Counted from the first letter of the stretch, positions 26,120 to 40,958 are shown. The stretch: 64,000 nt of DNA from Mizuhopecten yessoensis (GCF_002113885.1 NW_018408363.1:3083-67082), one strand, 5' to 3'. Numbers and translations: made by a program. Notes: generated from the sequence alone by a model not told the origin.

Positions 26120-29100
26120 CTATCGTACACTGTCGATTTCAGCATAATGGTTTCCTTCGTTGACATCCAAGTTCATGTAAATCTGCAACAGAGATAAATA
26201 GCTATTACCAAATGCATGGTATGTCTGTTGAATATCCAATGAATATAAGAAATCAACAAGGAATGATGATAAATATGCTGAATCATAATATTATCATATT
26301 TATTGGGGATAAAAATGCTCCTTAATAACAAGAAATGCAAAAAAAAATGAAACTTTTTAGGAATTTAGGGGTTTTTTTTCAAAATATTTTAAACGTTTCG
26401 GTTCAAGACACATAAGCCAATCAGACGTTGAACAACATGCCCTCGTAATTTATCACACTGCATTTATGTGTATTCAACAACATGACCCCGTAATTTATCA
26501 CACTGCATTTATGTGTATTCAACAACATGGCCCCGTAAATTTATCACAACGCGCTTATGTGTATTCTCGTTAACAGATATAGTAATCACCTGACTGTCCT
26601 CCACCATGCGTTGTAATCTCAAACATAACTCCGAAAATTGCGGTCGGCTCATTGGTCGTTCATTCCAACACTGCAGCATCATTGCGTACCTGTAATAATG
26701 ACAAGTTACGAATCACACGTAAGCAAGTTACATCAATCAAGACAAAGTTTCACGGTGTAAAAATATAATAGAAAATATACACCTGAGCGTAAGTAAATAT
26801 GGATAAAATGGGACACAATGTCGAAAAGTAAATATATTGATAGGAACCGAGGAGACACGGAAGGCTGGAAGTGTCCTGGAAAAGTAAAGGTACCGTGGAG
26901 AAGAGGAGACTATAAAACGAAAAACTTGATATTTTGGAATTTGCAAGTTTTGTGAATCACATGGTGTAAAGTTTCGTTTAACTACAAAGTGTTCCTGTAT
27001 ACCACTAAAAGAAGTACTTTGTATTTATTCTATCGCTTGCTACGTTGTAAAGGTAGTTTATATGTTAACGAAAACTCACATGGCTGGTTCGCACTTCTTT
27101 GGTCGCCGGAGTCGGAAGCCCTGCTTGAGGAGGTTACACATCTGCTGTGTCTCCAGACCGTGATAGGGGGTACCGCCCAGGGAAAATATCTCCCACAGCA
27201 GTATACCGAACGACCACCTGATAACAATAGACGTAACCATTGTGAAATTATTTGAGTGATGTGGTAAATTATTCAGGGAATTTAAACACGTTATTTTTTT
27301 TTTTTGATTGAAAATGCATTCAGATGTTAGTTCATTATTTTAAAGCTTTCTTCATTGGTATTTGGCTTAAACTAATGGTCCAGCGCTTAACGCCTTTTAC
27401 AAGAAAGGTTATTGATGTTAATTTGTAACCTTATGGCTCTAAATAAGCATTAAATTTACTGCTTGTGCAAAAAAAAAGTAGTGATGGATTCTTAGGTAAC
27501 GTGGGTAAAATTATATTTCGTTGGAAGAGGTTCACGTTAGTGCTTTTAATATTGCTAATTACTGTTGAATGGTATACATATTGTTACTTACACGTCACTC
27601 TGTGTGGTATACGTAGCATTGAAGAGAGATTCCGGCGCTAGCCATCTTACTGGTACTCTTGTCTGTAGAGAAAACGTACATTGAACAATGACAAACATCC
27701 ACAAAGATTCCAAGATAACGATTGAAGTTACATCGAAGAAAAGATCTTTTAAACTGCATGAATTTCATGTGTACAACGAAAGGATCCACAATTATGGTGT
27801 TCTTTTGCAGAAGTTTCATTAAATATATTTCGTTTAATATTTACATATGGCCGAAAGGAAACAGACGCACAATGCTAAATTAAATGAATCTAGCTGAAGT
27901 AAATAATAAACAACAACATACATTTGATGTTTTGATGTAGGTATCGTCGTGCTTAGACAGGCCAAAGTCTGCCACCTTGGCGATGAGGTTGTCGTCTAGG
28001 AGAACATTTCTGGCTGCTACGTCGCGATGGATTATCTAAAAGGGGAACACAGGAAATATGGCGATTAGATAGGATATAACAAAGTTAACTAGCGATTTTT
28101 TTTTTCGTTGCAAGATGATTGACTCAATTGAGTCCACGCCATTTGCTGTAGCATTCTAGTTGGAATTCATTATGGCACGGTTTACATGAAATACTAGTAT
28201 AAAACAAATTACCTGTTGGAGCCAAAACATGTAAATTAGTAGCTTTTTTATGATCTCTTTTGATTTCGATTTTCATTCTTTTAACCCTCAGTACCATTAA
28301 TGAGTAATGATGCAGTAAATGTTTTTGTGTTTTTTTGGCTTTCTACATTGACTTCCTTTTAGTTCCTATTATTTATCAATTTTATTCATTCATTTATTTT
28401 ATTTTCTCATATTAGCCGAAATGATAAGCACCTATAAAAGAAAAATTCTCATCAACGAGTCTTCAGTACTTTCATCTCTTCTAGGAGATTCTCCAGACTG
28501 TTTATTTGAAGTATATGTTATAACGTCACATAATAGTTCGCTATAGCGACGTTCGCCATATACGTAGCCGCCATATATATATATATCGTACGGTGAGATA
28601 TAGCCACGGGCTTGACTTAGCTGGATATGAAAGGTTAGGGATGCGTTTCAAAAAAAAAAAAAAAAAATAAGTTTAAGATTTTATAGACCACTTGTACAAT
28701 TGTTTGCAAGAAACAAGATATTGCGGTTTCAGTGTAATGCTATGGTCCATAAGTCAATAAGACATTATCTGACATATGTGTAAAAGCACATGTTCACTAC
28801 GTTAGAATGCTTTCGACTTACCTGTTTCTCTACCAGGTGGTTAAGACCTGATGCCACGTCCAATGCAAATTTGAGGAGGACAGAATTTTGCACGGGCGTG
28901 ATGGAACTTGTATTGTCGTATATATGAAATTTACCCTTCCGGATTTTTCTAAGATAGCTTCTTAAATCCCCATTCTTTGCATATTCCATGGCAACGTACA
29001 TTGTTCCTGCAAAGATTAAAATCTCTAGTACAGCATATGAATTATTAGGCTGCATATAAATAAATCTGCAAACCATAGAATGAACACACGTGACCATCGA

Positions 29101-38100: not shown

Positions 38101-40958
38101 ATGCATAACTTTTATACAAGACTCACTTCTGTTGACGACAAAATATTTGCACCTGCGCTTGTCAGCTTTTAAAAGGGTAAGGAATGCGGTAAAATCCTTG
38201 TTTGATGCCGCTGCATAAAGAAGCGGTATGTAATGTATGCTTGTTTTCCAGTGGTTGCTATGACGATAAAAAGTGTCGAAACCGGTTTATTGAAAAAATA
38301 GAGGATCCAGCAATAAAGCGAGGTATTAAGGTTCGGCTACATTTTAAAAATCTAATATTTATGTGATTATCAACATTCCCCCTAAATGATCTCTGTACGT
38401 AGGGGGAAAATATAATGCTATATTAGCTTATTAGAGTACATGCTCTAGTCATCGAGGAGGTGGTAAACATACTCTTTGAAAGCAAGGTCAAAAAAGTATT
38501 GCTCAAGCTAGATAGCATTCATCTTATATCGGTTGCATAGAAAATAATGGCGCATGTGGGACCATGACAAACTTTGTTACCTCTGTATTGCATTTCCATC
38601 GTTTGCGCTGCCAGAGTCTGTATTTGGCAATAAGTGTTTCTTCTGTAACGGAATATGCTCAAAATGTTGCGTCAATACTTCAAATAATTTGAAGCAATAC
38701 CAGACAACACTATTATCTGAACTGCAACAGAGTTTTATTGCAAGCAATCGAAATTGCAATATTTGTCAGAAGAGTGAGTTTGAATCTTTTCGGGAAATCG
38801 TCAATCGACCTATGTAGGTACAGAAGTTCTTTTTCATAGTTCTTTTTGAGTTCTTAAATGTTGGATTGCGTTTGAACCCATTGTGCTGATAGGTACGGGT
38901 TCAACTGTCCACGTTTGGGAACTGAATGTTGTAATTGTTGACATATCATTGTGAAATTCAACTGCAAAACTTTAAATACGGGTTTCATAAACATTTTCAA
39001 ACATGGGTGTACCGGAATTCGTCCACAAAACACGGCTTTAATTGTGGTAACTTTTGTACCAGAGGATATTTGAGTTCGGCTCCTCGGTCTTTCATTTAGT
39101 GTTTACATGTGTTTGTGTGTGATTCTGTTCGCAGAGTTTCGGGTTTTTTTATTATGTTTTTCAAATATTTTTACAAAGTAAGTAAGTTCTCAAGGAAATC
39201 AAAGAAAACCCGGGCGGGGGGGGGGGGGTGGAAAATTATACAGCTCAGCTTTATACAGTCCATATGAAGAACTTCCTGATCACGAATAAAAAATCGAATG
39301 TGAGTTTTTACAAAAATCTTGAATATCACAGAGGTACAATGACAATATTGTTTGTATTTGCTAGTTTGTTTGTTTTATTTTAAACAAAACGTGATGAAAA
39401 TTCACTTTTATTATATATCAGGAAACCTAAAGGATTTTAAGTGACAACGAAGTAAACATCTTATATGTTCGGAAAGACTTCAGACCTCTTTTAAAATATA
39501 CAAATTAACAGGTCGGACAAGCAGAGTTTGCGGTTGTTGATTTTAGATTTATTTTTTGTCACCGAAGTTTTGCTTCGATTTTCTCGATTCTGTTTACATG
39601 TGAAATCACAATCTTGACATCACTGCTTTTAATAAGCGTTATAAATAACACAACCATATTTATTGAGCTAGAAATGGGTCCTGTATAGCAAAAACAGATT
39701 TCTTATATAAGCTAAGTGTCGTTAACCAAAATAAGTCGATAAAATATCTCGTTTCACTAACGAGCATTTGAACTTGCTGAACCTGCTTTTCAGATGTTGA
39801 ATTCGTAATGATATGGTAGGAGTGTGTGGCAATATACATATATATCCTGTTCGTTTCCCAACTCAATTAGCTTGTAACTTTCGTACATTCACACATGAAA
39901 ATAGCATGTTTCAGTGGATGACTCATAATCTGAAAATATTTTTCGGCTATCTCAAAATCTCGTCGTGATTCTACAAAGATTTTATCGTTAAGCTAGCACT
40001 TGTGAGAAATGGAGTTGTCAAATAAATAGTGCCATTAGATCGGTATATATAGTAACGCTGAGGTACACATATAGGTTTACACAGATCTGTATAGTGTGTT
40101 TGCGGATACATTATAGATAGGGTCATAGCGTAGAGTATGGTGCATTGGGTGATACATATATAAGGCCTTAACGAACAGTATACAGTACTTTTAAAAAATG
40201 TACATTCATACTGCAAAGAAATAAATATGATGCTGATATTTGAAACTCTGTTCCAATACCGCTGAAGATATCTTGAAAATAAAGACGACTAGTACGAAAA
40301 TATAATTGTTCTTCATGAAATTATTATTACAGAACTTTAAATTTGAAAAGTAAAATAAGACTAGAATTAGGATAACGAAACTATATATTATGTAAAAAAT
40401 AAACACGTGACTTTATGCTTCAAAGCAGTTAAAAATAATGAAACAAAATCGTTTTGATCAAATCAAAATTTAATGGACAATAGAAACCGAAGAATTTGTA
40501 TCAAAAATTTAACTCTGATTTATACGAAAAATAACGTTAATGAGTAAACAGGTCATTATAATGAACAAAATTGTGTTATTCAAGTCCAATTCATTTAGCT
40601 ATATCAATTATGAACAGTTCAATGGATAAACAGCACCTCAAATAGATAAAATTATACATTTCAAACTTCACAACAAAGATTATGTATGCATGTACATATC
40701 TCATTGAGTACAAACAAATACATTTGGTTTCTTTTTTTAAAAGATAAACAAGTTTTGACAGAATAAATATAACTTTGCGTTAAAACATGGTAAGAAACCA
40801 GAATCTATAAATAAGTAAGTCAATTCTTTCTTACCTTGAGTACTTGACTGTACAAGAGACAATAATCCCAAGAAAACACACAGCATAAATATGATTCCTT
40901 CACTACTTTTCCTGGAGAAGGAATAGACGTGTGCTGTCGCCATACTGGATATGTTCAT
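26120..40958 (-). CDS. Tie-like receptor tyrosine kinase with EGF-repeat ectodomain, 17 exons, ~721 aa
   Basis: Minus exons: 40958-40835 (signal peptide); 36395-36309, 35836-35699, 34482-34345, 33967-33830, 33596-33462, 33182-33048, 31121-30984 (EGF-like); 30731-30568 (TM: [27 protein letters not shown]); 29829-29643, 29273-29163, 29006-28822, 28035-27922, 27662-27592, 27217-27080, 26689-26590, 26182-26120. Total 2166 nt in frame. Kinase motifs present: [60 protein letters not shown]. Confidence 0.9.
26431..26565. repeat. 45-bp tandem repeat, 3 copies
   Basis: aacaacatg.ccc.gtaatttatcacactgcatttatgtgtattc. Confidence 0.85.

Follow-up and report, generated by a model that had tools for sequence, protein, structure and literature searches.

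Gene structure of the locus

The window analysed is a stretch of 64,000 nucleotides from Mizuhopecten yessoensis (GCF_002113885.1 NW_018408363.1:3083-67082), and all positions are counted from its first letter. On the minus strand, positions 26120-40958 hold a 17-exon gene with a CDS of 2166 nt and a predicted product of 721 aa, whose ATG lies at 40958 and whose stop codon ends at 26120. All 16 introns are GT-AG, each with a polypyrimidine tract at the acceptor. The end of the transmembrane (TM) exon (30568) and the start of the next exon (29829) were fixed by comparison with orthologues, which added 11 juxtamembrane residues (721 vs 710 aa). The predicted protein is aligned to a RefSeq protein of Argopecten (P0161, 721 aa) over residues 1-721 of 721 with 90% identity. 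The exons are as follows.

Exon 1, 40835..40958, minus strand: carries the start codon at 40958 and encodes the signal peptide (aa 1-41); donor G/GTAAG, phase 1; alignment with Argopecten P0161 begins at residue 1
Exon 2, 36309..36395, minus strand: N-terminal EGF-like repeat, short, with 6 Cys (aa 42-70); phase 1-1; weak EGF_PEAR1L match
Exon 3, 35699..35836, minus strand: EGF repeat 1, 8 Cys, aa 71-116; phase 1-1
Exon 4, 34345..34482, minus strand: EGF repeat 2, aa 117-162; phase 1-1
Exon 5, 33830..33967, minus strand: EGF repeat 3, aa 163-208; phase 1-1
Exon 6, 33462..33596, minus strand: EGF repeat 4, aa 209-253; phase 1-1
Exon 7, 33048..33182, minus strand: EGF repeat 5, aa 254-298; phase 1-1
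Exon 8, 30984..31121, minus strand: EGF repeat 6, aa 299-344; phase 1-1
Exon 9, 30568..30731, minus strand: short stalk, TM helix (about aa 361-383) and first juxtamembrane part, aa 345-399; donor GTAAGC
Exon 10, 29643..29829, minus strand: Gly-loop and VAVK lysine K458, preceded by the juxtamembrane tyrosine Y410 (YEQV, invariant in 23/23)
Exon 11, 29163..29273, minus strand: N-lobe of the kinase with the helix C region and a GHHPNVV motif shared with Tie2
Exon 12, 28822..29006, minus strand: hinge plus the short, Tie-like kinase insert; no second copy in the genome at E<=1e-5
Exon 13, 27922..28035, minus strand: catalytic loop HRDVAARN (563), DFG (583) and activation-loop Y593 (invariant)
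Exon 14, 27592..27662, minus strand: P+1 loop (PVRWLAPE)
Exon 15, 27080..27217, minus strand: kinase C-lobe
Exon 16, 26590..26689, minus strand: end of the kinase domain, to ..RMVEDSQ; aligned to Tie2 ..RMLEE
Exon 17, 26120..26182, minus strand: tail of the protein, in which Y703-M-N-L is followed by Y714-A-E-I, and the stop codon

From the N-terminus, the protein is thus ordered as signal peptide, seven EGF repeats (a short one with 6 Cys, then six full ones with 8 Cys each), TM helix, tyrosine kinase and tail. The signal peptide and this set of repeats, which a first-pass annotation had read from the DNA, are indeed encoded on the minus strand at the positions listed. The ectodomain contains 54 Cys in total, and each EGF repeat occupies its own exon in phase 1-1. 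Intron 1 is 4.4 kb long and the intron between EGF repeats 5 and 6 is 1.9 kb.

Affinity of the kinase to Tie

Judged from its sequence, the kinase is of Tie type, closest to Tie1/Tie2 among the tyrosine kinases compared. Its seven pieces are colinear on positions 3-258 of Pfam PK_Tyr_Ser-Thr, and the motifs described earlier as intact (the run beginning GxGxx, and DFG) are present in the predicted protein, so that by its motifs the enzyme is predicted to be catalytically intact. The best single-kinase match in PDB is Tie2, with 292.9 bits vs 266.7 for FGFR1. The scallop kinase has a short insert that aligns colinearly with that of Tie2, with small gaps only; a short unsplit insert separates Tie from FGFR/RET/VEGFR/PDGFR (PMC4898815). 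When a library of 1.84 billion proteins was searched, the identified ones among the nearest non-molluscan proteins were deuterostome Tie or Tie-like receptors.

In a quick maximum-likelihood tree (IQ-TREE, 94 kinase domains), the molluscan sequences form a clade with 99% SH-aLRT. The same tree gives 100% to a clade of vertebrate plus ambulacrarian Tie, while the node joining molluscs, Tie and FGFR-like kinases has no resolution and the outgroups are poorly sampled. Because the tree leaves this node open, it is the similarity scores, the length of the insert and the tail that carry the label "Tie-type". With Tie2 as the top solved match, a short insert and a colinear tail, the Tie-type kinase proposed at first reading is upheld.

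A molluscan orthogroup

Orthologues were found in all four molluscan classes sampled, namely bivalves, gastropods, the chiton Liolophura and cephalopods (Octopus and Argonauta), which bears out the earlier caveat that EGF-Tie-like RTKs are probably not rare in molluscs. Full-length orthologues have about 690-750 aa, their Pfam content is limited to kinase and PEAR1L/laminin-EGF, and nearly all of them have about 54-58 ectodomain Cys, equal to seven repeats, the first of which is shortened in scallops. Y410 and Y593 are invariant in 23 of 23 sequences (the scallop model and 22 orthologues). The exon that bears the insert has no second copy in the scallop genome at E<=1e-5, and the molluscan receptor is probably a conserved single-copy orthogroup.

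The gene neighbourhood supports orthology as well. A lipase gene is the upstream same-strand neighbour both in the window and in C. virginica, and it is also contained in a fusion prediction of Pinctada; in the window, a 5-kb minisatellite sits between it and the receptor gene. Public annotation gives the orthogroup at least seven different names (e.g. Tie-1-like, Ret-like, draper-like), and our literature search found no paper on a molluscan seven-EGF Tie-type receptor.

The C-terminal tail

The last exon encodes Y703-M-N-L-x7-Y714-A-E-I, so the YxxL-x7-YxxI spacing of an ITAM noted at first reading is real. Residues 703-717 are the sole match to the ITAM consensus (YxxL/I-x6-8-YxxL/I) in the whole protein. 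The first reading had also warned that the motif might be a Tie legacy, and it turned out that the scallop tail is colinear with those of TIE1 and TIE2 (YVN-x8-YAGID), including bowfin TIE2 and toad TIE1, with no gap. In alignment A1, most rows are free of internal gaps between the end of the kinase and the last residue of Y-x-N-x8-Y-[AT]-x-I, and Y and N are invariant in 11 of 11.

Among the model and the 22 orthologues compared, Y703 and N705 occur in all 22 sequences that reach this position, and Y-x-N is the only tail feature invariant across the orthologues and all the Tie-like kinases examined. The conservation of L or I at +3, proposed earlier as a check, is only partial. Most gastropods and, among bivalves, the pteriomorphs, unionids and protobranchs keep the exact YxxL/I-x7-YxxI, so that within these groups the check does not refute the ITAM idea, but the pair is re-spaced, changed or lost elsewhere: heterodont bivalves have x5 spacing with YTNM as the second motif (Met at +3), which is another YxN site; the spacing is x9 in Pinctada; the Tyr of the second motif is Phe in the chiton; and the second motif is absent in Argonauta. 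Because the tail aligns gap-free to TIE1/TIE2, only Y-x-N is invariant and the second motif is changed or lost in some lineages, the ITAM match is best read as a Tie legacy, that is, as a by-product of an inherited two-tyrosine tail of the Tie family, on the evidence of these alignments.

Proposed signalling

The explanation that we regard as likely is a conserved, probably single-copy molluscan type-I RTK with seven EGF repeats, an intact Tie-type kinase and an ancestral Tie tail, which signals as a conventional RTK. To our knowledge, every RTK works by trans-autophosphorylation and then SH2 docking, and the scallop receptor would do the same. A ligand, probably multivalent or surface-bound, would cluster the rod-like EGF ectodomain, and the kinases would then trans-phosphorylate Y593 in the activation loop, followed by Y410 in the juxtamembrane part and Y703 and Y714 in the tail. 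By homology with the corresponding site of Tie2, which is known to recruit a Grb2-class SH2 adaptor, pY703-x-N705 would recruit an adaptor of this class, while pY714-A-E-I may serve as a further SH2 site, of Src-family/SHP2 type and under weaker constraint. Before its phosphorylation, the tail may in addition hold the kinase back, as in Tie2.

Tie1/Tie2 and the Tie-like receptors of invertebrate deuterostomes resemble the scallop receptor in the kinase, the short insert and the tail (Y-x-N-x8-Y-A-x-I-D), and the 8-Cys EGF class is common to the EGF module of Tie and the scallop repeats. The ectodomain of Tie1/Tie2 is Ig-Ig-EGFx3-Ig-FN3x3 (Pfam on TIE2, P0044, gave Ig_Tie2_1, I-set, EGF and fn3), whereas the scallop receptor has seven EGF repeats without Ig or FN3, and therefore also without the Ig2 through which Tie2 binds angiopoietin.

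Origin of the ectodomain

The less probable but still serious alternative concerns descent: in the stem lineage of molluscs, exon shuffling may have added an array of EGF exons of MEGF10/Draper type to a gene for a Tie-type kinase, so that the scallop gene would not be a Tie orthologue that lost Ig/FN3 and expanded its EGF repeats. The symmetrical phase 1-1 of every EGF exon suits shuffling, and molluscs also fuse the same repeat type to receptor tyrosine phosphatases. Single repeats score 44-55 bits when compared with MEGF10/Draper repeats, as opposed to 38-47 bits with the EGF repeats of Tie, but this edge is small and is biased, since there are many more MEGF/Draper repeats to choose from. 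The three EGF repeats of Tie are of the same class, and the whole scallop ectodomain matches the EGF region of a crinoid Tie-like protein significantly, with E 1.5e-17; because of this shared class, a MEGF10-kinase fusion need not be invoked. Besides, when the scallop genome was searched with a Tie kinase from a crinoid, no separate canonical Tie came to light, which fits the gene as the Tie of its lineage.

Exchange of ectodomains is familiar in this family. In amphioxus and echinoderms, lineage-specific RTKs carry the same kinase type on Ig+TSP1, LamG+EGF, FN3-only and Ig-only ectodomains, so replacement of the ectodomain on a Tie-type kinase is common, a point in favour of shuffling. These RTKs are multi-copy expansions, whereas the molluscan receptor is of fixed seven-EGF form with no close paralogue in the scallop genome.

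An engulfment or immune receptor?

The first-pass annotation proposed a candidate self-activating engulfment/immune receptor that may join ligand recognition, kinase and Syk docking in one chain. On this reading the tail is a working ITAM: once a ligand has clustered the receptor, its own kinase would phosphorylate both tyrosines, the tandem SH2 of Syk/Shark would dock, and haemocyte engulfment or immune activation would follow, so that a recognition module of Draper/MEGF10 kind would have its kinase built in. We consider this improbable. The exact x7 pair, kept as widely as described above, does speak for it. Moreover, and as a point against the conventional reading, the x7 spacing and the L/I at +3, long kept in many lineages, exceed what a lone Grb2 site needs and are compatible with a bidentate tandem-SH2 partner. 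The scallop tail fits the same consensus as Ig-alpha/beta, FcR-gamma, DAP12 and oyster CgIgR. Against this, the motif comes down from the tail of Tie, only its Y-x-N is invariant, and heterodonts, Pinctada, the chiton and Argonauta have the pair broken or re-spaced; unlike in canonical ITAM receptors, it ends a kinase-bearing chain, is homologous to the Tie tail and is not kept as a pair in all orthologues. We know of no report of Tie receptors signalling through Syk.

Also in favour of the ITAM reading, the nearest non-orthologous relatives of the ectodomain are MEGF10/MEGF11, PEAR1, Draper and SREC-like proteins (E 1e-40 to 1e-68). Together with CED-1 and SREC/SCARF they show the same repeat type, with 36-43% identity over about 290 aa; with molluscan MEGF10-like proteins, E falls as low as 1e-68. 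Receptors of MEGF10/Draper type need separate kinases, from the Src family and Syk/Shark. MEGF10, Draper and CED-1 begin with an EMI domain and end in a short non-catalytic adaptor tail with NPxY and YxxL/ITAM, whereas the scallop protein passes from its signal peptide straight into the first EGF repeat, and has seven repeats only and a full kinase. No EMI match was obtained in the window exons or in Argopecten P0161, and there is no NPxY in the cytoplasmic part of the scallop protein, which also counts against the ITAM.

As for partners and cell type, bivalve Syk carries tandem SH2 domains (PMC6994640; PMC4883820), and an ITAM-bearing oyster receptor is reported to co-precipitate Syk (PMC6994640). 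The top markers of macrophage-like phagocytes in the oyster include genes annotated as "Angiopoietin-1 receptor" (PMC12064177), but a link between these genes and this orthogroup could not be made, and in C. virginica the orthologue lies in no tandem kinase cluster within 10 kb. The ITAM/Syk reading is improbable and finds no positive support here. Its fullest form, slightly more doubtful still, is a one-chain Draper-Src42A-Shark module: a haemocyte phagocytic or scavenger receptor with a corpse- or microbe-binding ectodomain, its own kinase, the x7 tyrosine pair and bidentate Syk. If true, the two-tyrosine tail of vertebrate Tie would descend from, or could act as, an ITAM.

Completeness of the gene model

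The ectodomain without Ig or FN3 exons, as described at first reading, is confirmed from several sides. Pfam scans of the window exons gave no Ig or FN3 match, scans of the orthologues gave kinase and EGF alone with no Ig/FN3, and the three largest ORFs of intron 1 had no Pfam match. Two transcript contigs from other species (L007 and L008) contain complete intronless ORFs that encode this architecture, again with no Ig/FN3 match in Pfam, and stop codons lie in frame ahead of their ATG. Because of these two closed ORFs and the full-length Argopecten match, no Ig/FN3 exons should be hidden. About 20 independent gene predictions share length and Pfam content, and the upstream DNA is occupied by the minisatellite and then the lipase gene. 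That the EGF-only form is a model error, with Ig/FN3 exons lying in intron 1, in the intron between repeats 5 and 6 or beyond the minisatellite, has in its favour the length of intron 1 and the count of 0 reads from four RNA-seq runs over 35600-41100, a count that decides nothing either way, but is hardly credible and already largely refuted.

Significance

Recognition of the molluscan EGF-only Tie-type receptors as one orthogroup tidies the public annotation. The seven-EGF Tie-type architecture is absent from the 20 vertebrate RTK classes. As judged by alignment, the finding also shows that the Y-x-N ... Y-A-x-I tail is older than the protostome-deuterostome split. In conclusion, molluscs appear to retain one receptor in which a Tie-type kinase and tail are joined to a fixed seven-repeat EGF-only ectodomain, which provides a defined orphan receptor for bivalve immunology and developmental biology.

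Gene structure and protein layout

The receptor gene lies on the minus strand, with its ATG at 40958 and the end of its stop codon at 26120, exactly where the first-pass annotation had placed it. Local splice analysis divided it into 17 exons, in which every junction is GT-AG and every acceptor has a pyrimidine tract, and the final coding sequence is 2166 nt (721 aa). By comparison with relatives, the exon of the transmembrane (TM) helix was found to extend to 30568 (donor GTAAGC), the following exon beginning at 29829, and the juxtamembrane stretch gained by this revised junction is common to all orthologues. 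A weak donor in the TM exon (GTTCCT), which gives a 710-aa model, was ruled out, since orthologues place the juxtamembrane residues further on. The predicted protein is laid out as follows:

Signal peptide: aa 1-41
EGF array: one short 6-Cys repeat and six 8-Cys repeats, one phase 1-1 exon per repeat
Hydrophobic (TM) helix: about aa 361-383
Kinase domain: seven coding pieces, colinear with Pfam PK_Tyr_Ser-Thr positions 3-258
Tail: Y703-M-N-L-x7-Y714-A-E-I

The kinase motifs are intact, as had been claimed, including the Gly-loop, VAVK (K458), HRDVAARN (563), DFG (583) and the activation-loop Y593. The ITAM consensus reported for the tail was also recovered, and it is the sole such match in the whole protein. 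Besides, the window contains several other features:

4694-6253: 17-bp tandem repeat, about 92 copies, with long Cys-rich pseudo-ORFs in several frames
9440-9877, minus strand: fragment of a reverse transcriptase (RVT_1, E 2.8e-16), the remains of a retroelement 3' of the receptor gene
13261-13641, plus strand: MORN-repeat ORF (E 5e-11) and probable exon of an adjoining gene on the opposite strand
14652-15057: 31-bp tandem repeat, 13 copies with 100% matches, and therefore unusually homogeneous or very young
26431-26566: 45-bp repeat, 3 copies, within the last intron of the receptor gene, which accounts for a repetitive pseudo-ORF
42478-47608: 42-bp minisatellite, 77% matches, with a strong G-over-C and A-over-T skew and long spurious ORFs on both strands
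50281-58318, minus strand: lipase gene (Pfam PF00151), N-terminal part at 57902-58318 and C-terminal part at 50281-50649

Absence of Ig and FN3 exons

The first reading had found no Ig or FN3 exons, and this was borne out by the alignment of the model, over residues 1-721 and with 90% identity, to the RefSeq protein of Argopecten irradians (P0161, 721 aa). P0161 was also the query for whole-chain searches, the scallop exons being searched one at a time. Complete ORFs without introns, 709 and 747 aa long, are present in the Logan contigs L007 (3467 nt) and L008 (2766 nt), which come from other species. Each ORF has in-frame stops 5' of its start, and its signal peptide leads directly into the EGF region. 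Both contigs are spliced transcripts with the same architecture as the scallop receptor. Pfam searches on about 20 full-length orthologues gave a kinase and PEAR1-like/laminin EGF, nothing else, and the largest ORFs of the 4.4-kb intron 1 had no Pfam match. On the 5' side of exon 1 lies the minisatellite (about 117 copies), and beyond it the lipase gene. The comparative case that hidden Ig or FN3 exons are absent is strong. Four same-species RNA-seq runs gave 0 reads on 35600-41100, which is uninformative for expression or splicing. RNA-labelled data sets were ruled out as expression evidence; they cover half of a mostly intronic stretch and therefore represent DNA or pre-mRNA.

Orthologues, copy number and neighbourhood

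When the longest stop-free piece of the kinase was searched exhaustively, Tegillarca, Potamilus and Lottia supplied one close representative each. The full-length Potamilus protein then served as seed for a word search, which gave the wider orthologue set:

Bivalves: Argopecten, Crassostrea, Saccostrea, Pinctada, Dreissena, Mactra, Solemya, Sinanodonta
Gastropods: Haliotis, Gigantopelta, Littorina, Babylonia, Pomacea, Patella, Aplysia, Physella, Bulinus, Bradybaena, Candidula
Chiton: Liolophura
Cephalopods: Octopus, Argonauta

These orthologues carry conflicting automatic names, such as Tie-1-like, angiopoietin-1 receptor-like, Ret-like, draper-like, EGFR-like, VEGFR2, FGFR2-like and hypothetical. 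Nearly all full-length members have about 54-58 ectodomain Cys, so the seven-repeat array is fixed. The architecture was not found outside molluscs in the searches made, which does not imply its absence from annelids or brachiopods. As for paralogues, the insert-bearing exon matches itself alone in the 988-Mb genome at E<=1e-5.

In both the window and Crassostrea virginica (locus L009), the lipase gene is the same-strand neighbour of the receptor on its 5' side, and in the Pinctada gene prediction the two are joined in one model. This conserved microsynteny supports orthology. The lipase-then-receptor order also accounts for the 1169-aa Pinctada "fusion" (P0160), probably a prediction that read through from one gene into the next.

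Affinity of the kinase

Against PDB, the best single-kinase match is Tie2 (292.9 bits), compared with 266.7 bits for FGFR1; queries with single exons likewise gave Tie2. Like that of Tie2, with which it is colinear, the kinase insert is short, and this distinguishes Tie from FGFR, RET, VEGFR and PDGFR (PMC4898815). Of the nearest non-molluscan proteins, those whose identity was established belong to the Tie or Tie-like receptors, and they come from crinoids, urchins, starfish, Saccoglossus, amphioxus and vertebrates. In a quick maximum-likelihood tree, the molluscan clade has 99% SH-aLRT and the vertebrate-plus-ambulacrarian Tie clade 100%, while the node with the FGFR-like group is unresolved. 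Similarity and shared characters, and not a resolved phylogeny, are therefore the basis for calling the kinase Tie-type.

With a crinoid Tie-kinase probe, no separate canonical Tie was found in the scallop genome. The best exon-level match to the crinoid Tie-like kinase is another receptor-type tyrosine kinase gene (contig C5558, 258214-275631, minus strand; L002, L004 and L005), with N-lobe and C-lobe exons about 10 kb apart, an N gap between them and a tail ending in ..RDRDYLELE. It was rejected as a canonical Tie, with FGFR and Tie scores about equal and a different tail. We also observed a large group of Tie-type kinases with the tail ..PE[FL]DDN, different from that of the receptor (P0018, P0025, P0030, P0037, P0038 and others), whose ectodomains are FN3-only, Ig-only or Ig with calcium-binding EGF; where identified, these are from starfish.

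Ectodomain and its origin

The closest non-orthologous relatives of the ectodomain are MEGF10/11, Draper, PEAR1 and SREC-like proteins, together with molluscan receptor tyrosine phosphatases. Membership in the CED-1/Draper/MEGF10 family was ruled out: unlike those proteins, the receptor lacks an EMI domain, has seven repeats only, and bears a kinase where they have an NPxY/YxxL tail. The repeats match MEGF10/Draper at 44-55 bits each, where far more comparison repeats are on offer than for Tie. Their matches to the EGF module of Tie are significant too, at 38-47 bits for each repeat, and the whole ectodomain matches the EGF region of a crinoid Tie-like receptor at E 1.5e-17. Since the repeats match both, the receptor may be a molluscan Tie that lost Ig and FN3 and expanded its EGF module, or it may be a chimera from exon shuffling. 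Deuterostome Tie-type kinases bear many different ectodomains, so ectodomain turnover on this type of kinase is common. In several molluscan proteins (P0182, P0186, P0211, P0235, P0247 and others), a receptor-type tyrosine phosphatase is joined to EGF repeats of the MEGF type, which are often accompanied by F5/8 type C-like domains. With the same repeats on kinase and phosphatases, one ectodomain module serves both in molluscs.

Tail and proposed function

The tail is the clearest character shared with Tie. We aligned the tails of molluscan receptors with those of bowfin TIE2, toad TIE1 and the Tie-like receptors of crinoid, amphioxus and hemichordate. It turned out that most rows align without gaps from the kinase end through Y-x-N-x8-Y-[A/T]-x-I, and that the first motif never varies in its Tyr and Asn. 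The first-pass caveat that the motif may be a Tie legacy is thereby confirmed with tool-derived sequences. The 21-aa tail alone, too short a query, gave no matches in PDB.

When the model was compared with 22 orthologues, no sequence that extends to Y703 and N705 lacked either of them, and the residue at +3 was I, L or V. Pteriomorph, unionid and protobranch bivalves, like most gastropods, have Y-[A/T]-E-I as the second motif; elsewhere it, or the spacing, varies:

Heterodonts: YINI-x5-YTNM
Pinctada: x9 spacing
Chiton: Phe replaces the second Tyr
Argonauta: ends after YINV

The second motif is less constrained than the first. A Grb2-class SH2 site needs Asn at +2, whereas an ITAM has no such need. 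Because this Asn is invariant and the heterodont replacement (YTNM) is again a YxN site, the tail reads as an ancestral Tie docking tail whose fit to the ITAM consensus in many lineages is incidental. Some amphioxus Tie-like tails match that consensus too (YVNI-x7-YAVI).

We commit to a conventional receptor tyrosine kinase mechanism and infer all its steps: ligand would cluster the receptor, Y593 would then be trans-phosphorylated, the invariant Y410 and Y703, and also Y714, would be phosphorylated, and SH2 adaptors would be recruited, with a Grb2-class partner at pY703-x-N. The exact x7 spacing, long kept in many lineages, would leave room for a bidentate tandem-SH2 partner (Syk, SHP2 or p85), and bivalves possess Syk, which an ITAM receptor is reported to bind (PMC6994640; PMC4883820); an ITAM/Syk engulfment receptor, the role first proposed, is nevertheless improbable.

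Expression data from oysters offer two leads. Three adjacent genes annotated "Angiopoietin-1 receptor" (G32145-G32147) are top markers of macrophage-like phagocytes (PMC12064177), and oyster "Tie" and Syk both turn on between pediveliger and spat (PMC4883820). They point to haemocytes or metamorphosis, but neither lead could be connected with this orthogroup; the C. virginica orthologue neighbours the lipase and has no kinase neighbours within 10 kb.

No paper on this molluscan receptor was found in the open-access literature, and searches for molluscan Tie-like receptors by automatic gene name gave urchin, thrips and tick papers only. Public databases already contain the orthologue sequences, as predictions without a name or with a wrong one. 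In conclusion, the receptor is probably an ordinary receptor tyrosine kinase in mechanism, with an architecture that is undescribed, distinct and conserved.
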